DNA from: Vitrella brassicaformis CCMP3155
Taxonomy: Eukaryota; Protista; Chromerida
Length of the DNA stretch: 58,728 bases
Reading direction: 5' to 3'
NCBI GenBank assembly: GCA_001179505.1
Contig: CDMY01000522.1
Span: 1 to 58,728 of the forward strand
Shown here: in pieces, positions 35,401 through 49,542 of the stretch
Numbering within the stretch: the first letter of the stretch is position 1
Layout of the letters: every line of letters starts with the position of its first letter
Program-made: the position numbers and the translations under genes
The notes under the pieces: generated by a model
Databases searched by the model: none
The model's input: only the letters and a program-made list of their open reading frames with translations
Told to the model about the DNA's origin: nothing

Positions 35401-38400
35401 ACCGACAAGACCGATCGCACACGGACTGGCCCGACGGCACCGCCGATGCACCGACTCAGCAGAGCTTTGCGTCCCTCGACCGAGGAATGAGTCTCCAGGA
35501 TGCTCTTGGGAGTGCGGCTGACGACAGCAGCAGCCCGTCCGCAGCAGAGCAGACACTGGAGTTCGTGCGGATCGACCAGCCTGCTGATGAGCCGCAGTGG
35601 GACAGTGTCATTGTCCGCGGCCCCCACGGCAGCCAGGAGGAGGACGGTCGCACCACCAATGGTCGGGGCGTGGCTGCGATGGTGCGGAGGGAGTCAATGG
35701 GCACACCTGAGTCCGAGGGTCAAGACGAGGATGAGGAGGAGGATGATCAGGGGATCGTCGCTCAACAAGACGATACAGAGATGGATCAGGACGTCGATGC
35801 ATCTCCAAACGGCCGCCGTGTGCCGCGCAAGGACACCCCGGTGCTCTCGGTGGACGCGGTGGCCCAGGTGCAGGCAGAGGCTGCCATTCCCACGGAGGAG
35901 CCGTCGGAGACACCTGACACGCTGGTGACGGAGGATGACACCACCGCTCAGGAGGGGGATGAGGAACTGCAGGAGGTCGCTGCAGACACGACCGACCTGC
36001 CTCATGGCAGCAGCGGCAAGGCCCCACCCTCCCCCAGGGAGGTCGCTTCCATCAACCCTTCCGATGAGCCACTGGATGGGCAAGGCGATACTGCGGTGTG
36101 GAACGACGAGCAGGAGCCGTCATCATGCCACCCCGACGAGGCCGTCGAGGCACATGAACAGTCGCTGCCTCCCCCTGAGGCCCCTCCCTCACCCGTCATA
36201 TCTTATCGGCTCCCCGCGGACATGATGGCCGATGATGATGAGGAGGAGGAGGGCGACGATGACGACGACGGGCAGCAGGAGGCGCAGGAGCGCTTCCATG
36301 CCAGCAGAGGGGTCGGCGAGGAGGTGGACAGGGACCAGGAGCAGGAGCAGGACGAGGAGTCAGATTACGTCTTCTGTCGGCGGGAGTGGGTGCAGGAGGA
36401 CAAGGGGGGACGCTCCTCATCTCAACCTGCCGCTGCCACCATGCAGTCGTCCCCGTCCGAGCAGATCGACGATCTCGAGCAGAGCGACCTCCACGAAGAT
36501 CAGACGGCGGACCCCCCACTCGAGGAGGACGATGAGGACGATGAGCGCCCTCCAGAGCCGAGGCGCCAGCCTCCCCCCAGCCCCCACCCCCATCGCGTCA
36601 CCCCCACCCTCTTCTCATCCTCTGACGAGGCTGACATCGATGCAGATGGGGGCGTGGACGGCAACGGCCAGCCCTTCTCAGAGATATTCGTCCCCGCCAT
36701 GGAGGAGGACGAGACGCCCTCCGACTCGCCATCGCCTCAGGCGTATGGCGCCATGGTGGACTCGAGAGACGGGAACGGCACGGAGGACATAAGGGAGGAG
36801 GGCAGGCGATCGGGCGTCGACGACCGCCCTGCTGCAGGTGGCCGCGAGAGAGGAGAGCAGGAGGGCGGGTCTGCGGATCGTGAGGGCGCTGAGGAAGAGG
36901 GTGACAGCCCCACCTGCACCAGCGGCAATGGCGAGAGGACTGGGGGCGGGGGCGGGGGTGGGAGTGGGAGTGGTGGGGACAGCGAGGACAGCCCTGACGA
37001 CGAGCTGCCGGGGTCAGTGTGGCGTCACCGTGAGATCATCGCAGCGGCCGTGTCGGGCATTCTCTTTCTGCTCCTCAAGGGGGCGCGCAAGTCGCGCCCC
37101 GAGGAGTTCTCGTGGCTATCGCAGCTCATCAGCGACATGAACGGCATCCTCGTGGTGCTCAAGTACTTCAACAATGACACCGACAGCAGCAAGGAGGGAG
37201 GGGGAGACAAGGGCGAGGCGGCCAATGGGGAGGGAGGCACCAACGGGGGCTGTGAGAACGGCGTGGCTGCCTCGGCGGGGTCGTCGCCGGGCGGGGAGAA
37301 TAGCAAGGGGCCGCGGGGTCCGCACCGCAGCATGAGATGGATGGAGCGCATGTCGCCGGTGCTGCCCTGTCTGCAGCACGTCGACCAGTGGGTACGCAGC
37401 GACTCGACTGACTCATTTATGTATGGGTGGGAAGGGGATGGAACCTAAAGCTTCTCTGCTCTGTGTGGTCTCTCCCTGTCCGTCTGGTCTGGTGCACTGA
37501 CTGCAGCATGAGAGGCACTCGATGTGGTATGGAGCTGCCGTCTACCGCCTCCTTAAGTAGGCGAAGCGAGGCGACGACATCCAAGAGGCAGAGAGAGATG
37601 TGTGAATTCTTTCTCCTCGTGGATTGATGTGATGTGATATTGTGTGTGCAGGGTGTTGTATCTGCTGTCGAAGAACTGCCCAGAGAGGCTGCGCAAGTAC
37701 CTGGTCCAGTACAAGGTGAGCGATGCGATTTGAGGGATGGATGGATGGTTGGATGTCATCCCCACCACCGATGTCATGTGTGCCTTGCAGGCGCCGTTCA
37801 TCCTGAAGCGTCTGTACAAGCTGGACAACCCCGTGTACACCAACATGGTCCTCAAGATCATGAAGAAACAAGTCAGATACATGCCCAAGTAATGAAACAA
37901 ACAAACCACCCACAAACATGCATACCGACCGACCGACTGGCTTGGCTGCCCCACACTCACGCCAACACACATACCCCCACCCAACACACACCCCTTGTGC
38001 ATCTGTGTCCCTCTCACTCGTGTGGCACTCACCACTTGTCGGCAGGAAGTGGAAGCAGACCAACATGAAGACCATCTCACACATGTACTCGGCGGTCCCC
38101 ACGGCCCCACTCGAGGACTGGCTACTCACAGAACAAATCGGTGGGTGGGTACCCATCCCATCGACCCCCCCCAACACACACTGCGAGCAGCACAGTGCAT
38201 CCACACACACCACACACACCACACATGGCCCTCTGTTGGTTGGTTGATATGGCTGGCTGCCATGCCAGGCGGTGAGGAGTACGAGGGTCCGAGCCAGGCT
38301 CATCTGGGGGAGGGCAACAAGCTGTACAACACCATATTGCAGGAGCGCCACTTCGACCACGCCCACACCCCGCAGCTCTACTACAACCCTCTGCAGAGCC

Positions 38401-39749
38401 AGTACACCATCCCCCACCCACCTGTGAGCCTGCACCACTTCCCCGCCGACCTGGCCCTTCAGGACGACCCACACAGGGGATGGCTATCGGACGGAGCGGG
38501 CGGCCTCGTGCACCTGCCGCCATCGCCCTACCCCTTTCCCCCGCCGCTCACCTTCCCCAGGCAGCAGCAGGGGAGGAAGACGGAGGTGCCTCTGTCCATG
38601 GGTGCGGCTGACGGGGCCGACCTGGAGAGGCGCCTGATGCGCCTGGGGGGCATACAGCACCGCGTGTCGACCAACGGCACGTCCACTCAGCCCATGTCGT
38701 CCAGCAGCCACACGCCGGTGGCGGCACAGAAGGTGCCTGAGGATCCGCTGTATCACCCTCCGACACGAGAGGAGCTCATGCGGCTGCAGCAGTTCGGCAC
38801 ATTCATCAAGCAGCATCTCGAGGAGGAAGGCGCCCTCTGCCCACCAAATGGCGACACTGTCGACATGGACATCGACATGGACAGCATCATAACACCACCA
38901 TCACCATCACCGGCGGCAGCAGCAGCAGCATCAGCTGACGACGGCAGTGTGGCTTCTGGTGTGAGGGAGCTGTTGGCGAGTCCGCCGCCGACCAGCAGCG
39001 GGGCTTACGCGTTAGTGGATGCCAAGGAGGACGACAAGATGCTGCGGATGCTCGAGATGTGCGGCGCATCCATGAAGCCCTCACACGTCATCCCGCCATA
39101 CCTGGCTGAGGCATTCACAAGGGCCACCATCACCCAGCAGCAGGAGCAGCAGCGGCAGCAGGGAGTGTCCTCTGGCGGTATTCCATCAGCAGCAGCAGCA
39201 GCATCCCCACTCGGTGTGTCGACAACCAAGCGCATCAGCCGGTCCAAATCGAGCCGCCGCGCGTCGCCCTCTTCCCACCTGTCGTCATCAGCGGCCGACA
39301 GCCAGATCATCAAGTTCGTCAAGCGCGAGCCCCTCATTTGGGAGGAGTGCTTCGACGACATCGACAACACACACAAACGACTCATCAGGGGAGAGGTCGG
39401 CAAGGGGGGCCACACGACCACCACCAACGACACCAGCAAGACACAGAAGCAGCAGCAGCAGCAGCAGCAGGTGTCCTCTTCTCGCGGCACCACACACACC
39501 CAAAGCCAAAGCCAAAGCCACAGCCACAGCCGCCGTCAGCAGAGGTCCTCTGTGCTGGCCTTGGCGCGTTCGACGCCCTCTGACGCCAACCTGGACCTCA
39601 AGGCCTTTGAGGAGGGGCCGGGGTGCGCCAGCTATGTGCTGCGGGGCGAGCGCAAGGGCAACTATGACGAGTGGCTGCAGGACGACGTGTGCGACTACAC
39701 CTGTGTGCTGGAGGGGCTCAGACAGTACTTGTGCCAGAGCGACAGATAG
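32414..39749 (+). CDS. STRIP1: Striatin-interacting protein STRIP1/2 (FAM40/Far11; N1221 + DUF3402-like) with large low-complexity insertions
   Basis: DEFLYPGELEDFLVARDCF; IVILLKLLL; RHREIIAAAVSGILFLLLK...LISDMNGILVVLKYFNND; YKAPFILKRLYK...VLKIMKKQVRYMPKKWKQTNMKTISHMY...EDWL; C-terminal NYDEWLQDDV. These match remembered STRIP/Far11 blocks (RHKEII, SAPILKR, NMKTMSAIY, YDLWL). Confidence 0.85.
33626..33925. other. Assembly gap (300 N) inside a STRIP1 intron
   Basis: Run of N flanked by G-runs, just after donor AAG|GTGGGG. Confidence 0.99.
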
Positions 39750-40529
39750 GCAGCAGCGACTGCCAGTGGGTAGCAGTGGTGTGCTATAGCAGGGGATGGT
39801 GGGAGGGAGGGAGGGAGGGAGGAGTGGGGGGCTCTGGCCCTTTTGTTTGTGTGTGCGCACCACTTGAACGCATTTGTTTGGAGGTGACCTTGTGTGCAGT
39901 GATTGCAACAGTGCTGTAAATGACCTTTGAGACGAGCAAGCCGTCCGTCGTCCACACCCCCCACGAACCAGACCCACCACAAACACGCAAAAGCCATACA
40001 TATGTCGGCCGGTGCAGTCACGCCATCCATCCATCCATCCATCGACAACCACACAGGCACCCGGACACGACAGACCATTGCCACACACACACTCACACAC
40101 GATGCCCGTGTCACCCGCCCTGGCAGAGAGCCAGCAAAGACTCAGACGGACAGGGAAGGAGGCAGGGAGGGAGGGAGCAATGACAAGGAGGGAGGGCGGG
40201 AGGGCAGGAGGGAGCAAATCGACAACGACAGCAGGGAATGGAATGAGCAACACTCATCATTGATATCCACACACACAAAACAACACAACACCTCCTCACG
40301 GACCCACCCGCAACCAGCCGTGTGGCTGACACACGGCAGAAAGAGAGAGAGGCTCCACTGAACCCTGCCGTCTGTCTGTCTGTCCGTCGTGATGCACGCA
40401 CATGCTCACAGACCCACGGAAAAAGTCAGACAGGCAGACACCACCAACGAAGAAAACACCTGCCTGCCTGCCTGCCATGTGATGTGTATCATCCATCACC
40501 GAGTGATTGGTACGCTCGTTCCGTTCTAG

Positions 40530-41494
40530 CTAGCCCATCCAGCCCTTCCGGTAGCTGCTCCGCCTGTCGCCACCCAGCGCCTGCACACAACACACGCACC
40601 AGACCACACACAACATCAACCACAACAACACTTTCCCCTCCGCCCACCCACCTGTTCCAGCTTCATAGAAGTGCCCTGCTGCGACACCCGTGGTAGCACC
40701 CCCGTGGACCGCCGGTTGGAGTCGCCGGCCGGCGATGTGGGCGACATGGGAGCCATAGACTGCTGGGAGGTCATCAAGACGGGATCCAGGCCTCGTCTTG
40801 GCAATGCGGGTGAGCCCATGATGCTGGCACGTGCGGCTGAGCGGGGCATGCGAGCTGAGAGGGGGTTTGGGTGGGTGAGGGATGACGAGCGGGGCGGGGT
40901 GTGTGCGGCCCCTGGGGCTGAGGACATGATGGTGACGTGTTTGTGGAGGGTGTTGGAGAAGGGCGGGTGCGTCACGCCCTGCTCCTTCTGCTCCTGCCAG
41001 TACCTGCAGGCACACATCACATCGTCCACACACACAAGTGGGTGTGTGGCCTGGGTTGGAGAGGGGGGGAGGGTTTCTTGGTTACTTGTAGTTGTGTTTG
41101 AGGTTCTCTGGCCAGTCCCGCTCGCCGATGAGGCTGGTTAGCGGCAGCCAGAAGGGCTTGATGACGAAGTCGATGAAACCCAACTGCATTTACAGTGAGT
41201 GACACACATATGGAGGGGTCGATGCGAGCAAGAGCTGAGTGAGTTACCTGCATGGACGCCATGGCTTTGGTGTCCTCTGGCGGATTCTTCATGAATGGCA
41301 GCCCCTCCAAACCTGCACACACACACACGATAAGCAAGGTACCAAACACATCATGGTGGGTGCCGACCCGACACAATCTGTCTGTCTGTCTGTCTGTTGG
41401 TTAGGTTAGGTCAGGATGTGTGTGGCGTCTGTCTTGTCTGCACTCACTCACCCAGGTCATCTTCAAGCAAGTGCTGGTTGTAGAACTCCGTTAC

Positions 41495-41525
<31 letters not shown>

Positions 41526-44500
41526 ACACACACACGCAGAGACGTTCCCACTGGATGTGTGTGGGTGTGGGAGGGTGGGTGTGCTTCGGTCGGTCCTGCC
41601 CATCCGCTCACTGACCGATTCGTCTGGTCCACTTGACGTACAGCTCCAGCGGCAGCAGGGGGTTCGAGATGTCGGCGGCATGCACCATGCAGTCACACTG
41701 GACCAACGGACCATGGATCACCCACAACAAAGGCACACAGGCAGACAGACAGGCAGGTGTGTGAAAGGAATGGTCTTGGGCTCTCTCTGTCTCTCTGTTT
41801 CTCTCTCTCTCAGTCTATGACGATCTGACCATACCATGAAGTCGAGCTGGTCATCCGACAGCTCCACTGGCTCACCGCCCTTGGACAACTCTGTCACGGC
41901 CGTCGTCAAATCCTGCACACACACACACACACGAACACGCTTCCTCACACACACACACACGCACGCACACACACACGCACGCACACACACACGCACGCAC
42001 ACACACACGCCGATCGACGCCCACGTGCGGACCGACCTTACCTTGTGGATGGTCATGTCGGTCGAGAGGATGGACGAGATGCACCGCTTCCTGAGCTGCT
42101 TGTACTCTGGGAAGGGCAGGAGGGAGAGGAAGTCGCAGCCCGGCAGCGTCAGCAGCTCGAACAAACACGACGAGTGGTACGACTCGAGCACCGAACGGTC
42201 GTTGTAGCGGATCGCCTTCAAAGCAAAGAGCGCAAAGAAAGATGGGAACGAACGAACGAACCAACGAAGAGAAAGAGAGTTAAGATGTCATGTGCTTCTG
42301 GATGATGATGATGATGTTGTGTCGGTCGACGCTGTGTGTGTGGGTCAACTGGTTACCAGTGGGTGTCTGGCTTGGACCAAGAAATCATTGTTCGACCCAA
42401 GATGGCCTGCACACACACACACACGTGGGATACGCCCCCTCCTCCCCTCCCCGTCTCCCCTCCCCAGCAGGCAGCATAGCACCACCCTACCAATATCGTG
42501 GCAAAGCGCCGCAATAAGGCACCCCATAGCCCTCAAATCCCCCAGCACGTTGGTCACCGACGCAGGGCCGTCGGCGTACGTGTGCGCCATGGCCTTGATC
42601 AGCCGCTTCTCGCTCACTTCGGCACTGTGAGACGGCGCCTTCAGCCGCATACGGCCCGCACCGTGCTGACACATCAGAGCCGTCACATGCATCACCGAGA
42701 AACCTGCAGAGACATGGAGGGTTCAGAGAGTCAGGGGGCCGACGGGAAAATCTGATCTTCTTCTGCAAGTGTGGGGGGGACCATGGTGGAAGTTGTGGTA
42801 GGGGTTGGCGAAGTAGTGGCGGCCGACTTGAGCCACGAAGTTGCGAAAGAACACCTGGAACACCCGACAAACACCCACCAAAGCACCCACCCATCAGCAC
42901 CCATCCCTCTCTGTCCAGTCCATCCATCCATCCATCCATTGTGTGAGTGTGTGTGCGGCGCGGTGCCTGCCTTGTTGAGGTCGAACAGGTCGAAGAGGTT
43001 GAATTCTGCGAAGATTCGCTCGACCAGGACGATGAGCTCGCCTTTGGAGAACTTGAGGGCGTCGAATGAGAGCGAGAAGACATCCTCCATCGGGATGTCG
43101 TCAGGGGGCGGGGGCCGGGGCGGCAGGCGAGCCTCGGCGTCGAAATACGACACGCGGTCGGGGTCGGCGTACAATGGCTGGTGGAGAGAGAGAGGGGATG
43201 ACGGGCATAATGCCTGTGNNNNNNNNNNNNNNNNNNNNNNNNNNNNNNNNNNNNNNNNNNNNNNNNNNNNNNNNNNNNNNNNNNNNNNNNNNNNNNNNNN
43301 NNNNNNNNNNNNNNNNNNNNNNNNNNNNNNNNNNNNNNNNNNNNNNNNNNNNNNNNNNNNNNNNNNNNNNNNNNNNNNNNNNNNNNNNNNNNNNNNNNNN
43401 NNNNNNNNNNNNNNNNNNNNNNNNNNNNNNNNNNNNNNNNNNNNNNNNNNNNNNNNNNNNNNNNNNNNNNNNNNNNNNNNNNNNNNNNNNNNNNNNNNNN
43501 NNNNNNNNNNNNNNNNNNGGGGGGGGCTGGGGGCTCTGTGTGTGCGTGGTTGTTTGTACTTGTGAGACGGCGAGTAGCGGTATGGCCTCGTTGTCTGCGG
43601 TGCAGACGGCCAGGGCGTCGCTGTAGTAGACATCGTTCAAACCGGCCGTCCCATCAGGCTCCACGTAACCTACAAACGCACAGACGCACAGATATATTCG
43701 ATGCACTGCATCCTTCCCCCCAACCCCCTCCCTCTCACACTTTGCCCTCTCACTCACCTGAGAGCAGCTCCCCCGCCAGCACGGTCATCCCGCCAGGCGA
43801 TGCACCCGACGGCGAGGACGGCTTCCCCTCGCCCGGGCGCCCAGCTGCAGCAGCCATCTGTATCTGCTGTGTGGTGGTGTCGGTGCGGATGGACACCGGC
43901 GAGCCGCCTCCGCCCTCCGCGTCGGTATCGGGCCTGCCCATGGCCGACACAGGCAGCTTCTTGACCACCAGCGACGCGCGCGGCAACGCCCCCGACTGCA
44001 CCAGACGGTTGCCGGCCACGTCTAGCAGACACTCCACCTGATGAGATCGATGTGGCCAATGAGAGAGAGAAGGGGGGGTGGGTGGTGTTGTTGGTTGTGA
44101 GGTGAGGTGGTTCGCTTGCCTCTTCTGCGAGGTCTCCGGCGAGGTCTCTGATCTCCCACGGCTGCGCGCCCTCATCCACCGGTCCCAACACGCGATGCAC
44201 CGCACCCCTACGAAGAAACCACACACACACACACACACAAAGGGGCGGTCAGTCAGTCAGTCAGTCACCACACACACCGATGGATGGATGGATGTTTCTC
44301 CGCGACTGACTCACCGGGCGACCTGCTGCAGCACATCCACCTGCTGTCGGACCGGCCCGGAATACGACCACGGCGGCCATGGGAGGCCGCTGGTGGCACT
44401 GCCGCCGCCGCTGTCCCCACCACCCTTGTCCTCACCACGTCTCCCAGACCCACCACCCTCACCACCCCCACCGCCAGCCGAGGTCGGTGATGGGTCAGCA

Positions 44501-47500
44501 CTCGCCGACGGCTGCTTGGGGTCGCTCGGCGCCTCCAGGTGCATCGAAGAAGCCACCCCTCCCCCAGACTCTCTCTGCTGCGATGGGGCTCCCTCGCCGC
44601 CTTTCCTCTCTTCAAGGCTGCGGCGCCTCTCCGCCATGGAGGGCGACTTCCTGATGTCGCCCGTGTTGGTGTTTTCCACTGGGATGCGGTCCAAGGCCGA
44701 GGGCAGGTCGGTGGGGGACAATGGCGAGTCGTCTGACGGCATGGGGGGGAAGGGGGGCGACGGGTGGCTGGAGGGGGTGGACGGCACCGCTGTCGGCTTG
44801 CTCACGGAGAGCTCAGCCGCCTGCAGTGCATCCAGGCGGTGGGTTCTGTTGCCTGGGTCTGGTCTCTCTCTGTGTGGGGTTTAGGTGTGCTGCTGACCTA
44901 CTTACCTTTTTCCAGGACATGAGCTGGCTGCCCATTGCGTGGCAGATGACGGTCGATGTCAGCGGCCCCCAGTGCAGGAATATCCGAGACCGCACAGACG
45001 TCTTCTTCCCGCCCGCCCGGCGGCTCTCGGGCGATTCGGCCTCACCACCTTCACCACCTTCACCTCCACCCTCCCCGCCACCAGCACCAGCAATAGCACC
45101 GCCCACAGAGAAAAAGGCCGTCTCGTCTGCAGCAGTGTCGGCGCCTCTTGTGGTCTTGTCACCGCTCATTTCCTCCATCCACTCGCGCAGCTCGCCCCTG
45201 GCGCCGGAGAGGAGGTCGTGGATGGTCTTTTGCGTGAAGAAGTCTGCTGATGTGAAGATGGTGTCCTGGGTCTTGAAACGATGCAGGTCGAGGGCTGACA
45301 GATGGGTGGACCTGCACAGACAGAGAGGGTGGGGAGGGTAGAAAGTATGCAAGCTCTGTGTGTGTGTTGTGTGTGTGTGTGTGTTTGTGTGTGTGTGCGT
45401 GTGTGTGTACGCTCTGTGCATTGAAACGGACGTCTTGGGTGAGGACTCAGTGCTCGGCCGCGGGCTCGACACACCCTGTCATTCGCACGCCCACACAGAC
45501 AGACAGACAGACAGACGCACGTGCACGGCTACACCCATCCCGTCTCTCCCCCTCCCACACTGATCACCCGTGTGGTCTTCTGTATCGACACATCCTCATT
45601 GGCTTGCATCTCAATGTCACTCAGATGCACCACAGACCCGCCGCCACCACCACCACCACCACCAGCCGTGTTGTTATCCCCCCCACCACCGTCCAGGTGC
45701 CCCTGTGTGGGCTTGCGGCTGGTAAACGTGTTGTCTCGGTGCAGAAAGGTGGTCGACGGCAGCCAACAGGGGTAGTCGGCAGGTTCGTCAGCCACCATCA
45801 GTGCCTTGAGGTCGAACCCCATGGCGAGAGCGTCCCTGATCTGCGCCCGCCAGACCTGGTTGCGGAGCGTCTTTGTGGCGGCGACGATGAGGAGGACGCC
45901 CTCGTCCTGCTCCTTGATGCGCGTGACGTTTTGGGTGGTGACCAGCCGGGTGAGCTCCTTTGGCGAGTGGATCATCTTGACCTTCATGTCGCAGAGGGTG
46001 GCCACGTAGTCGAGCTTGGACTTCTCGGCGTCAGACAGGCCTATGCCAACCAGGATACGATCCTCTAGCTGATGGAGGGAGGGAGGGATGGACACGGGGG
46101 AGGCAGGCAGACACAGCAACTGCGTGTGTGTGTGTGTGTGTGGGTGTGGGTGTTGTGCGCGCGCCTGTGCGAGTGCGAGGCTGGGCGGTATTGGCATGTC
46201 GCTTCTGTCGCGGCGACCGAACACCTCAAACGACAAAGCAAAGGTGGAGCCCTTCTCCTGGGGAGGGACAGACACGCGATCAGAGGGATGCGGGCAGGAC
46301 AGGCATCGTATTGTGTGTTGTGGGTGGGGTGGTATCCTCACTCACCGCAGCGGAGAGCACATTCAGGTTCCCTCCGATGGCTCGGATGAGCCGCCGAATC
46401 ACAGCGAAATGCAATGTCGACACCGAGTCCTACACACGACACGCACCATCAGACACACAGACAGACACATCCCTCCCCAATCGCTCGCTCCCGTGACAGA
46501 CTCACGGACCTTGAAAGCATTGTGCACATCGCTTTCGGAGAGGATCTTGTTGGAGTCTTTGACCTCGACCTTGATGGTGTATCTGTGGCTCATGAGAGCC
46601 ACGTTGGGGTTGCTGCCTGTGGCCGCCGGGGCGGCCACGCGGTTGGTCACCACCACAAACATGTCGATGGTGCCCTTGCTGTGGGAGGAATGCGTTATGG
46701 CGTTGAGCAGCAGAGACTCCAAGACCTGCAGAAATGGCAGACACAGAGAGAGATCGGCGGATGTGCACGTGTGAGAGCGCGACTTCGGTCACCCACCTGT
46801 GAGAGCGCAGCTTCGTTAGAGAGCACCTGGGAGGGGAGGCCTACACAGACCACACACACACACACATTCCCCCCTCGGCGGCCGGCCGGCACAGGATTGC
46901 GTGTGGCGCGTCTGTGCGTACCAGGTCCCAGTCGGCATCTTATGTTGAGCCCCTGCCTCGCTGCCCGTGGGGCATACGCCTCGATCGCCCGCTCAGCCAC
47001 AGACACGAACGAGAAGAAATCCTGACCGTAGTAAGCAACACGAGAGTAGAGTGTGTTTACAGATGCCTCCCTCGTTTGCAGCACTGGGACAGCTCACGTT
47101 CTGTGGGATCGCCTTGCGGGTCTCCTCGGCAGTGAGCGACTCCAGACGGGCGAACTGAGTCAGCTGACGAACAGGGGAGCGACGCAGCAACCAGCCAGGT
47201 GATTCTGTGTGGTGTCTGTGTGTGTACCTGGATGATATTGCCGTACAGCAGCTGGGCGATATGTGCCATGGCCTGCATCGTCACCCACAGCGGCAGATTC
47301 CACCCGAGCGGCGCTGTGGTTGACACAGGCGCAGACGATGGCCCCTTCACCATAGCTGCCCATATCCACCATCCAATCCAACACCGGTGACCCAACAAAC
47401 AAACAAGCACACACACGAATGGCTGCACCATGCACCACCCGGCCCAGCTAAGGTACCCTACCCTTGTGTTGGTCGGTGGAGTTGATCATGGTGGCGGCGA

Positions 47501-48948
47501 AGGCCATGAGGGCGATCAGCCGTGCCCGCATCCGCAGGTCGAGGATCTCGCTGATGTACCCCAACGACGCGCGCAGCCGGCTGCTCTCAAACTCCACCCT
47601 GTCTGTCAGCTCCTTCAGCTACACGCACACATGAAGGGGGACGACCCGTATCATGATGTGTGTCGGCTCGGCGCGGCAGGTGCGCTGCGCTGACCTGTGA
47701 GATGTTGGTGCCTCCCGGGCTGATGGGTGAGAGTATGAAGTATCCGAACAGCAGCAGGCCGAGGAGGAAGGTGACGAGGCCCAGCAGGATGGGAAACAGG
47801 AGGAAGTAGTTCTGATCCTTCAGCTCCATGGCGTCCACTATCGACGACTGCAGCTCCTTCACACTCTGCACACACACACACACACACACGCACGTTCGAT
47901 CCCCCACTGCACTCACTCAGCTCACGCACCACTTGGTAGGTATCGAGTGCGGTGTCCAGGTCCTTCATGAGCACGTCGAGTGCGTCACACCCCACTGCAT
48001 CCAGCAGCCCGTCGCGCAGCGCCGCCACAGCCGACGCCACACTCGCCACCTGACCCTTAACGCGACTCGACGCAAACGATCCCGTAAAAGTCACCCCAAG
48101 CCCATCGAGGTCCCGAAAGTGCGCGTCAGCCGCCCTTATGCCGGTGGCCTTGCCGTCGAGGTCTCGCACCTCAGCGTCGGTCATGGTGGATGGGGGCTCT
48201 GTGGTGCAGACGGTGAGAGTCAGTGAGAGGGCCGTGGAGCGGAGGGACTGCGTGTAGAACATGAGTGTGGTGAGCTGGTCGGTGTCCTCTGGGAGGGGCC
48301 GGGTCTGGAAGGCGATCGCCTCGGCGATGATTATCGACAGCAAAGACAGCACAAACAGCACCGTCAACGCAGCTGCACACAACACATACACACGTGGAGG
48401 GACAGCAGAGGGAGGGACTCATGGCATGGGAGGGGTAGGGTGCATTCAGGGAGGCCCTGTGTGTGGTGTGCCGACCGACCAATGATGCGTATCCGTTGTC
48501 TTCTCTGCCGCGCCCTGAGGTCCATCTCGCGGCTGACCATCTTGGTGTCCACCATCATGTTCTGCGTGTCAGCCCACACAGACGGCCGCCGGTTGGCACG
48601 CCGGCTGGTCGGACTCCCACCACCTTCATCCACGCCGCCGCCCGACGGCGGCACCCCCGTCTTGTTGTCCTTGCCCTCAAACATGAGCAGGATGGAGCTG
48701 TCCCGCTGCTTGCCGCCCCCGCCATTTGCCATACCACCCGGCCCGATATCGCTCGAGTGGTCGTCGTCAAGAATGATGTTCTGGGTCTTGCGCATGTTGA
48801 GTGTGAGAGCCAGGGACGACAGCTGGCCGGTGCCCTTGTTCTTGTGAGGGTCCTGCAGCCGAGAGGGCCGCCGCATGAGCAGCCGCCCCGGCTTGCTGGT
48901 CTCCTCCTCCCCCGCGGCTGACAGTGTGCCGCCCGACGGGGAAGTCAT
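40530..48948 (-). CDS. Membrane sensor / degenerate histidine kinase (DHp + HATPase_c) / pseudo-receiver / class I cyclic-nucleotide phosphodiesterase fusion, multi-exon
   Basis: PDE: NPYHNFHH, AALCHDIGH, VLESYH, STDMTIH, HAADISNP, EFYNQ, QLGFIDFV. Upstream in-phase exons: TM1 (AALTVLFVLSLLSIIIAEAIAF), ~150-aa loop, TM2 (YFLLFPILLGLVTFLLGLLLFGYF), FSFVSVAERAIEAYAPRAARQGLNI, LSQVLESLLLNAITHS (N-box), IKVEVKDS, IRRLIRAIGGNLNV..EKGSTFALSF, and a receiver-like RILVGIG...TSRKP. Splice phases were checked from TM2 through the receiver; linker exons are less certain. Confidence 0.88.
41915..42010. repeat. Intronic (CA)n/(CACG)n microsatellite, representative of many intronic/intergenic simple repeats in the window
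   Basis: Direct reading; similar tracts at 1488-1510, 2375-2432, 5180-5200, 45360-45410 and 46125-46145. Confidence 0.9.
43219..43518. other. Assembly gap (300 N) inside a phosphodiesterase-gene intron
   Basis: Run of N. The flanking exons (…LAVSQ | PLYADP…) join in phase 0 without needing a hidden exon. Confidence 0.99.
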
Positions 48949-49542
48949 GACGGCTGGCTGGGGACTGGGTTGCGCTTGCCTGTCGATGAATCGCTGAAGT
49001 AAGTAAGGGTGAATGTCTGCTGCCGCTGCTCCGACTCAGCACCTCCTATTCGCCTCAGACAGTTCTTAGGGGCACGTTCTTCTCACGAGGAGCTGCTTCT
49101 GTTGTCTGAATAATGAAAGAGCCAGCCTGCTCGCCGCCTCTCGTGACTTCGAAGTCTTTCAACGTCCTTTCGGCGTTGGCGTATCCTCATGTGTGCACCC
49201 TGCAAAACACACATGACAGCCCCGTCCGTCACACTGACTGATAGACGAACACCGCCCGCCCGTGTCCCATCTACCGACCTGTATGACGCGAATCTCCCGA
49301 CCTGTATCTCTATCTTCACTCCTCTGTCGTTGATGATCTGACGGCACAAGGTTCGCAGAGAGGGAAAGACGCCGGCTGCATGCGAGCTCGCCAAGAGCCC
49401 CCACCAGGCCCCCTTCAAGTTGTCAAGTTCTCTTCAGTCAAGCGTTGAGCCATCGACAGACCTTCATATTGCTTGCCTTGCTCCACATTTCCCTCCCCAA
49501 CCGCACATCCGCACTGTTTGACCCTCCCCCACGGTACCAGCA

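Follow-up and report, generated by a model that had tools for sequence, protein, structure and literature searches.

Does the minus strand of contig CDMY01000522.1 of Vitrella brassicaformis CCMP3155 encode a single membrane protein in which a histidine-kinase chassis is joined to a cyclic-nucleotide phosphodiesterase (PDE), and, if so, could the kinase-derived part still act on the enzyme? A preliminary description of the window, which comprises the first 58,728 nucleotides of the contig, had assembled in-phase exons into one such polypeptide. We followed this proposal with RNA contigs, profile comparisons and structure prediction. The reading that we favor, with a probability of about 0.6, is that a degenerate kinase CA domain and an intact PDE are combined in a two-pass membrane protein, the N-terminal third of which is the relic of a sensor kinase.

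The RNA contigs define one spliced transcript without an in-frame stop, with its ATG at 48948, an in-frame stop upstream of that ATG, and its stop codon at 40532-40530 (Table 1). The introns follow the GT-AG rule in 26 of 29 cases and are GC-AG in the other three. Twelve of the splice junctions are given directly by the contig listing, and the rest were placed by exact match of contig-coordinate arithmetic, using gaps of 64, 74, 50, 88, 173, 367 and 668 nt. X6 contig 16 (5249 nt) extends from exon 2/3, which encodes TM2, through the kinase-like exons and the linker into the PDE and the 3' UTR, and X7 contig 19 (2750 nt) spans exon 12 to the 5' UTR past 49100. The kinase-like exons and the PDE exons therefore share one transcript. 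Furthermore, position 43560 is joined straight to 43177 in both X6 contig 16 and X7 contig 18. The assembly gap at 43219-43518 is therefore intronic, and the continuity of the frame is independent of it. The single polypeptide proposed earlier is thereby borne out: the 1803-codon frame is unbroken, and all motif strings quoted at that stage are present in the spliced protein, one of them upon removal of the 81-nt intron 46841-46921.

Table 1. Features of the locus, with positions in the window and the evidence used.
Feature	Position	Strand	Evidence
Coding region, one gene, 30 exons, 1803 aa	40530..48948	minus	Spliced RNA contigs, exon model, stop-free translation
Untranslated regions	5' UTR extends past 49100; 3' UTR to about 39815	minus	RNA contigs
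N-terminal cytosolic low-complexity region, aa 1-154	48487..48948	minus	Translation, composition
TM1, aa 155-177	48311..48486	minus	Kyte-Doolittle peak 2.94
Loop with two Cys, predicted to be extracytoplasmic, aa 178-324 (about 147 aa)	47806..48310	minus	Between TM1 and TM2
TM2, aa 325-347	47737..47805	minus	Kyte-Doolittle peak 2.74
Juxtamembrane region where DHp would sit, aa 362-476	47104..47618	minus	phmmer, DHp HMM, hhalign, hmmalign
CA / HATPase_c (GHKL) domain, aa 477-638, exons 7-11	46222..47103	minus	Home-made kinase HMMs, hhalign, shuffles
Alpha/beta domain after CA domain, aa 658-750	45790..46068	minus	AlphaFold single sequence, Foldseek
Low-complexity linker, aa ~780-1340, about 550 residues	43085..45702	minus	Composition; exons joined in RNA contigs
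Intron 18 (GT..AG), enclosing the whole assembly gap	43178..43559	minus	Contig join 43560/43177, splice ends checked
Class I cyclic-nucleotide PDE catalytic domain, aa ~1345-1670, exons 19-28	41003..43072	minus	Pfam PDEase_I, PROSITE-type signature, phmmer
C-terminal low-complexity tail, aa 1671-1803	40533..41002	minus	Translation

The membrane part is simple. Only two segments of the spliced protein reach a Kyte-Doolittle value >=1.6, confirming the topology of two hydrophobic helices, and the coding sequence of the first is split by intron 1 (48373-48479). The region ahead of TM1 matches no Pfam family and closes with an Arg-rich stretch directly before the helix; from this positive charge on the N-terminal side, the segment between the two helices is predicted to lie outside. 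This loop has no Pfam hit and no ligand-binding fold was recognized in it, its single-sequence AlphaFold model (pLDDT 41) being uninformative on the fold and lending no support to the mostly helical character described earlier.

The kinase ancestry of the cytosolic part is carried by the CA domain. With home-made profiles, this segment scores 40.0 bits against an HMM of five E. coli hybrid kinases (E 1e-14, for one target) and likewise 40.0 bits against an HMM of 85 kinase cores, and hhalign places it at 98.8% with an E value of 6e-17. The segment reaches 49.3 bits, compared with <=6.8 bits for the best of 2000 shuffles. In every case, the language-model (atlas) neighbors of exon 9 are HATPase_c domains. 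The Pfam HATPase_c model gave no match when run on single exons, a search that does not cover the spliced domain. Judged by sequence comparison, the segment is a true CA domain, homologous to those of histidine kinases, which agrees with its earlier assignment to the GHKL type.

The catalytic motifs of this domain are only partly preserved. The N-box Asn, the G1 Asp and the C-terminal KGSTF are retained, and profile alignments show the G1 box DxGxG changed to DSNKI and the G2 box GxGLGL changed to VSTLHF, with loss of the glycines in both, as had been read from the genomic sequence. The ATP lid is shorter by about 12 residues, a deletion seen as a 12-column gap between the F box and G2. Since the N-box Asn and the G1 Asp survive, the domain may have kept some nucleotide binding; as a kinase, we infer that the module is catalytically crippled.

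Between TM2 and the CA domain, the preliminary description had placed a DHp-like helical pair, and this homology finds no confirmation: the DHp HMM gives -0.9 bits, hhalign 1.8%, and aa 355-476 stay unaligned in hmmalign. The region contains an insert of about 30 aa, and phmmer gives a weak alignment to helix 2 of the ArcB and RcsC DHp domains for its last helix (aa ~441-466) alone. The DHp assignment is thus one of position alone. Two histidines are present, at aa 412 and 445, and neither stands in an H-box context. The suggested replacement of the H-box His by Glu in GYISEIL holds insofar as no H-box His is found, but GYISEIL itself aligns, non-significantly, to the helix-2 motif and not to the H box. 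An active kinase of an unorthodox kind, which would bind ATP non-canonically and control the PDE by phosphorylating an atypical residue of its own chain or of a partner, could draw on these two histidines and on the retained Asn and Asp; we consider it highly improbable against the loss of both glycine boxes, the shortened lid and the missing H-box context.

The alpha/beta domain that follows had been described as a pseudo-receiver, for which the profiles offer no support. A receiver HMM trained on 110 domains gives -0.4 bits and finds no receiver across all 1803 aa, hhalign gives 0.5%, and Pfam Response_reg (PF00072) has no match at E values up to 10. A phmmer search of 1.84 billion representatives returned no relative of the domain and no receiver protein. 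The single-sequence AlphaFold model, of low confidence (pLDDT 55.8), runs strand-helix-strand-helix-strand-helix-strand and then into disorder. With this model, Foldseek yields generic flavodoxin/Rossmann-like matches (best E 0.009), a mixture of TIR, dehydroquinase and designed Rossmann folds with some receivers. The earlier observation that the acidic pair and the phospho-Asp are missing is upheld, in that no acidic pocket is present and the predicted strands 1 and 3 end in GIG and VAAT with no Asp, although receiver positions cannot be assigned by a reliable alignment.

In contrast to the kinase-derived part, the PDE is well preserved. Class I PDEs are marked by the signature H-D-[LIVMFY]-x-H-x-[AG]-x-x-[NQ]-x-[LIVMFY], together with the HNxxH histidines and a later metal-binding Asp. 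A regular-expression search of the spliced protein finds this signature as HDIGHLGSNNDF at aa 1471, across an exon junction that is supported by RNA contigs, accompanied by YHNFHH at aa 1397, HAADISN at aa 1580 and QLGF at aa 1637. Exon 23 alone matches Pfam PDEase_I (PF00233) with 55.5 bits, compared with a cut-off of 24.8, and two more pieces, in collinear order, correspond to positions 21-45 and 150-176 of the profile. In a phmmer search of the PDB, the 58 aa of this exon recover Rh-PDE and PDE9A at E values of about 1e-9, Rh-PDE being the best (8e-10). In keeping with the initial reading, the domain is intact with respect to all class I metal motifs and is predicted to hydrolyze cAMP/cGMP. 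The first two metal motifs are separated by about 33 aa more than those of PDE4D.

Between the two halves, the linker consists of 15% G, 11% S, 9% A and 9% P, contains Gly runs, and ends in a proline run directly ahead of the catalytic domain. Its exons 14, 15, 17 and 18 match no Pfam family, and from its composition it looks disordered. The tail behind the PDE likewise has no Pfam hit.

The preliminary description had proposed that the signal of a ligand bound by the outside loop travels along TM2 and the DHp-like helices to the dead CA domain and the pseudo-receiver, and so switches the PDE without phosphorylation. The order of loop, TM2, helical region, CA domain, alpha/beta domain and PDE is indeed that of a hybrid kinase plus an output, and pseudo-kinase receptors that signal without phosphotransfer, such as the plant subfamily-2 ethylene receptors, are an established precedent. 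Rh-PDE of Salpingoeca rosetta (PDB 5VYD, 7D7P) shows that a fused PDE can be gated by a membrane sensor, there an 8-TM rhodopsin connected through a 76-residue coiled coil (PMC7644710). Here, however, that coiled coil is replaced by some 550 residues of low complexity ending in a proline run, receiver homology is unsupported and the fold of the sensor loop is unrecognized. Because of the long linker between relic and PDE, a rigid conformational relay is disfavored, and we regard this reading as rather unlikely.

At the other extreme, the kinase part could be an anchor and nothing else, with a PDE that is constitutive or controlled by partners or by phosphorylation of the linker or tails. The degenerate G boxes would fit this, as would the alpha/beta domain, whose lack of detectable relatives suggests fast evolution, and a review describes the regulatory regions of apicomplexan PDEs as undefined, with phosphorylation as their probable control (PMC10865986). 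Yet the CA domain remains recognizable to kinase profiles, at 40 bits, with its hydrophobic core motifs kept, and the frame is open across 30 exons and expressed. Together these observations argue for continued selection on the kinase-derived module and make its complete loss of function improbable.

Under the favored reading of a sensor-kinase relic with an intact PDE, the relic would be incapable of autophosphorylation, so no phosphorelay would pass through it. It would most likely serve as a membrane-anchoring and dimerizing module, possibly with a response to a ligand. Class I PDEs act as dimers, the sensor-fused Rh-PDE among them (PMC7644710), and the relic would hold a pair of PDE domains at the membrane on flexible tethers. 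Control of the PDE, if any, would run through dimer geometry, tethered contacts or phosphorylation of the linker rather than through a rigid relay from helix to helix. The gene probably arose by the fusion of a sensor kinase to a cyclic-nucleotide enzyme, comparable with the intact kinase-receiver-cyclase proteins of Vitrella (PMC6324907).

We found no description of a CA-domain relic combined with a class I PDE, and the protein is a real, apparently undescribed variant of the sensor-PDE fusions. Dictyostelium RegA, in which a receiver is fused to a class I cAMP PDE and served by separate histidine kinases via RdeA, likewise unites a two-component module and such a PDE in one polypeptide. RegA has a functional receiver adjoining the PDE and neither a kinase nor a membrane part, whereas the protein described here has a kinase CA domain, a pair of TM helices and ~550 aa of linker, and no receiver was found in it: low-complexity, proline-rich sequence occupies the place just upstream of the PDE. 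A GHKL/CA domain kept after loss of the His and/or the G boxes is known from E. coli RcsD, which was aligned here, and from the plant subfamily-2 ethylene receptors and the kinase-related domain of phytochromes; it functions there without autophosphorylation of the canonical type. None of them is known to carry a phosphodiesterase.

Rh-PDE resembles the Vitrella protein in coupling a membrane sensor to a class I PDE at the C terminus, and the similarity of the PDE domains was measured on the single 58-aa exon 23, but the protein here has only two TM helices, and its linker is of low complexity. Kinase-receiver-cyclase fusions, which occur in chromerids and Perkinsus (PMC6324907), share the sensor-kinase chassis and the cyclic-nucleotide enzyme. 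Those proteins have an output that synthesizes cyclic nucleotides, and Pfam recognizes both their kinase and their receiver motifs, whereas the protein described here carries a degradative enzyme as its output and a kinase that has degenerated. Plasmodium PDE alpha-delta and the Toxoplasma PDEs also carry TM helices upstream of a class I PDE (PMC10865986). Apicomplexan and alveolate PDEs typically have six such helices near the catalytic domain, with no kinase-like module reported, and the N-terminal regulatory regions of the apicomplexan enzymes are described as undefined or as having diverged past recognition (PMC10865986). Should an extracellular ligand alter cyclic-nucleotide breakdown through a histidine-kinase chassis without phosphotransfer, which we hold to be doubtful, the protein would represent a small family of receptor-type PDEs and could be a still-recognizable ancestor of those apicomplexan regulatory regions.

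The phosphodiesterase (PDE) gene at 40530-48948 lies on the minus strand of a region of GC-rich eukaryotic DNA, in which its open reading frames appear as short in-phase fragments. Two of the four public sequencing runs covering the stretch (X6 and X7) behave as RNA assemblies, and their contigs were aligned to 43519-49100 and 39600-43700. Short segments bounded on the plus strand by CT..AC are absent from the contigs, which identifies these segments as GT..AG introns of a minus-strand gene. Twelve splice junctions are listed directly by the contigs, while the remainder lie in microsatellite-rich introns and were masked. More specifically, microsatellite blocks in the introns and the 3′ UTR draw hundreds of unrelated contigs (word depth ~16,000 at most) and create many false joints, so that several true junctions are hidden. 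The masked junctions were assigned by their GT/GC..AG ends together with an exact match to the contig coordinates, and the chosen exons reproduce the lengths of the unplaced contigs (64, 88, 173, 74, 50, 367, and 668 nt) to the base. As a whole, the gene comprises 30 exons and 29 introns, the latter measuring 64-141 nt except for one of 382 nt. Its 1803 codons are uninterrupted, starting from an ATG at 48948 with an in-frame stop upstream and ending with a stop codon at 40532-40530.

The 382-nt intron contains the assembly gap, and its length is an estimate only. X6 contig 16 and X7 contig 18 both join 43560 directly to 43177, which places the gap (43219-43518) inside intron 18 and without bearing on the frame; a break of the coding sequence at this position is thereby ruled out. 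Furthermore, X6 contig 16 (5249 nt) spans exon 2/3, all kinase-like exons, the linker, and the PDE and extends into the 3′ UTR, and X7 contig 19 covers exon 12 through to the 5′ UTR. The preliminary description had read the kinase-like and PDE exons as one gene, and this is borne out by the single spliced contig bridging both; with junctions agreeing in two runs, separate genes and a chimeric assembly are ruled out. The contigs are short-read assemblies, with which a minor internal-start isoform remains compatible. A second copy of the protein was not found in the window by tblastn.

Two introns have lengths that are multiples of three and are stop-free in frame. Retention of the 81-nt or the 96-nt intron would add 27 or 32 residues within or just after the kinase-like ATPase domain with the frame intact; the RNA contigs represent the spliced form. 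On the plus strand, a neighboring transcript (X6 contig 15, X7 contig 17) ends near 39790. The contig of the PDE gene's 3′ UTR extends to about 39815-39833, and the two genes are arranged tail-to-tail with 3′ ends that nearly meet (39600-39833).

Features of the PDE gene, its surroundings, and the CA domain of its product.
Feature	Position	Strand	Evidence or remark
GC-AG introns (3 of 29)	46069-46164, 44038-44119, 42855-42970	minus	RNA contig arithmetic supports all
Stop-free introns, multiples of three	46841-46921 (81 nt), 46069-46164 (96 nt)	minus	
Microsatellite blocks, CTG/TCTG- and GT-type	40459-40476, 41377-41397, 41733-41737, 42405-42426		introns, 3′ UTR
ORF of neighboring transcript	37995-39749	plus	poly-Q/poly-A-rich protein
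CA domain, phmmer against ArcB	aa 445-660		19.9 bits, collinear
CA domain, profile of five hybrid kinases	aa 470-638		40.0 bits, E 1e-14 (one target)
CA domain, profile of 85 kinase cores	aa 477-638		40.0 bits
CA domain, hhalign			98.8% probability, E 6e-17
CA segment against shuffles			49.3 bits; at most 6.8 bits in 2000 shuffles
Exon 9 alone, language-model look-up			only HATPase_c/GHKL clusters

The predicted catalytic domain at the C terminus is certainly a PDE, judged from its sequence. Three collinear pieces match Pfam PDEase_I, and exon 23 by itself reaches 55.5 bits (cut-off 24.8). A PROSITE-type PDE signature at aa 1471 crosses an RNA-supported exon junction, and the motifs YHNFHH, HAADISN, and QLGF are all found in the spliced protein. 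As an oddity, the first two metal motifs are spaced ~33 residues further apart than in PDE4D. Among solved structures, exon 23 best matches the catalytic domain of rhodopsin-PDE (Rh-PDE; entries 5VYD and 7D7P, PMC7644710), followed by PDE9A.

Hydropathy analysis yields exactly two membrane-spanning candidates, at aa 155-177 and 325-347. An Arg-rich stretch precedes the first of them, which suggests that the N terminus lies inside, a 147-aa loop outside, and the remainder inside. For the outside loop, AlphaFold gave an unusable model (pLDDT 41).

Every sequence string quoted in the preliminary description occurs in the spliced protein. On stop-free pieces and single exons, PDEase_I was the sole Pfam match and no kinase or receiver family was matched. 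Because the candidate ATPase (CA) domain, the HATPase_c/GHKL domain of histidine kinases, is divided among five exons (7-11), this negative is not decisive, and profiles applied to the spliced protein reversed it. References were the E. coli kinases ArcB, BarA, EvgS, TorS, RcsC, AtoS, and RcsD with their regulators, as well as 80 diverse bacterial kinase loci retrieved using an alignment of the E. coli kinases; all were compared with the spliced protein. The phmmer, profile, hhalign, shuffle, and language-model results (Table) together show that the CA homology is real. The profile alignments also confirmed the earlier motif reading: the N-box Asn, the G1 Asp, and the C-terminal KGSTF are kept, while DxGxG has become DSNKI and GxGLGL has become VSTLHF. 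They further revealed a 12-column deletion in the ATP lid and an ~18-residue insert ahead of G1.

A dimerization and phospho-acceptor (DHp) region had been assigned to what is now aa 362-476, with GYISEIL as its probable H box. The DHp profile scores -0.9 bits and hhalign gives 1.8% there, hmmalign leaves the region unaligned, and no histidine in an H-box context is found in it. The string GYISEILDL aligns, without significance, to the helix-2 motif instead of the H box, and a weak alignment to helix 2 of ArcB and RcsC is confined to aa ~441-466. The proposed receiver homology of aa 658-750 likewise has no profile support: Pfam is negative, the score with an HMM of 110 receivers is -0.4 bits, and the hhalign probability is 0.5%. 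AlphaFold, run on the single sequence, predicts four strands with helices between them (pLDDT 55.8), for which Foldseek returns only weak, mixed flavodoxin/Rossmann-like matches, including TIR domains and some receivers. In the Atlas search, exon 12 matched TIR-like clusters with scores no higher than 0.80, which we treat as no more than a lead to a flavodoxin-like fold. Since BarA and RcsC also carry an alpha/beta domain directly after the CA domain, aa 658-750 may be a receiver-like remnant.

No relative of exon 12 was found by phmmer among 1.84 billion representatives. The window's own protein was also missing from the results, so an empty search of this set carries little information on distribution. 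The single phmmer match to exon 12, a 4745-aa silk-like protein (P0001) matched in 23 stretches, is a repeat artefact: it contains ~20 near-identical, spidroin-like repeats of ~190 aa, was matched via summed weak repeat scores, and is unrelated. Metagenome scans yielded no relatives of exon 9 or exon 12.

With both glycine boxes lost, the lid shortened, and the H box absent, canonical autophosphorylation is very unlikely, going by established kinase biochemistry. The same losses make an unorthodox active kinase extremely improbable. The preliminary description had further proposed that the sensor, kinase-like, and receiver-like parts act as a conformational relay to an intact PDE. Membrane segments, kinase-derived domain, and PDE do occur in one chain. 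The relay would require mechanical coupling of these parts to the PDE. Instead, residues ~780-1340 form a low-complexity stretch that contains Gly runs and matches no Pfam family (G 15%, S 11%, A 9%, P 9%), with a run of prolines directly ahead of the catalytic domain. The linker of Rh-PDE, in contrast, is a 76-residue coiled coil (PMC7644710). A true conformational relay thus appears unlikely, and a flexibly tethered PDE is preferred. More specifically, the kinase relic would anchor and dimerize the tethered PDE and may be ligand-responsive, with control exerted via dimer geometry, tethered contacts, or linker phosphorylation. We give this reading, identity and mechanism taken jointly, a probability of about 0.6, and consider a pure relic quite unlikely.

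In apicomplexan parasites, cyclic-nucleotide turnover governs motility, egress, and differentiation. A recent review describes the regulatory regions of their PDEs as undefined or "diverged beyond recognition" (PMC10865986). Judging from its composition and intron style, the window probably derives from a free-living relative of these parasites, and the N-terminal module of its PDE is still identifiable as a sensor-kinase relic. Some alveolate PDEs might therefore derive from kinase-receiver-PDE fusions, which would mirror the kinase-receiver-cyclase fusions known from chromerids, and dead kinase domains could act as regulatory or dimerizing modules for PDEs. Parasite PDEs may hold comparable relics, which could be found if profile or structure searches started from this protein.

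Full-text searches of open-access papers turned up no account of a class I PDE with a fused kinase-like domain; PDEs go unmentioned in a survey of eukaryotic histidine kinases (PMC6324907), and a review of apicomplexan PDEs gives no kinase-like regulatory domain (PMC10865986). The databases searched seem to be without this protein, so their results give no measure of its taxonomic spread. To our knowledge, Rh-PDE is the one characterized sensor-PDE, and it shares with the present protein the pairing of a membrane sensor with a PDE. RegA shares the combination of a two-component module with a PDE; by their defining tests, the protein falls outside the RegA-type proteins as well as outside working kinases and receivers. 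The protein also has features of two further groups, the kinase-receiver-cyclase fusions, which occur in Vitrella, Perkinsus, and green algae (PMC6324907), and degenerate kinase receptors such as RcsD. The architecture that unites these features in one protein is solid.
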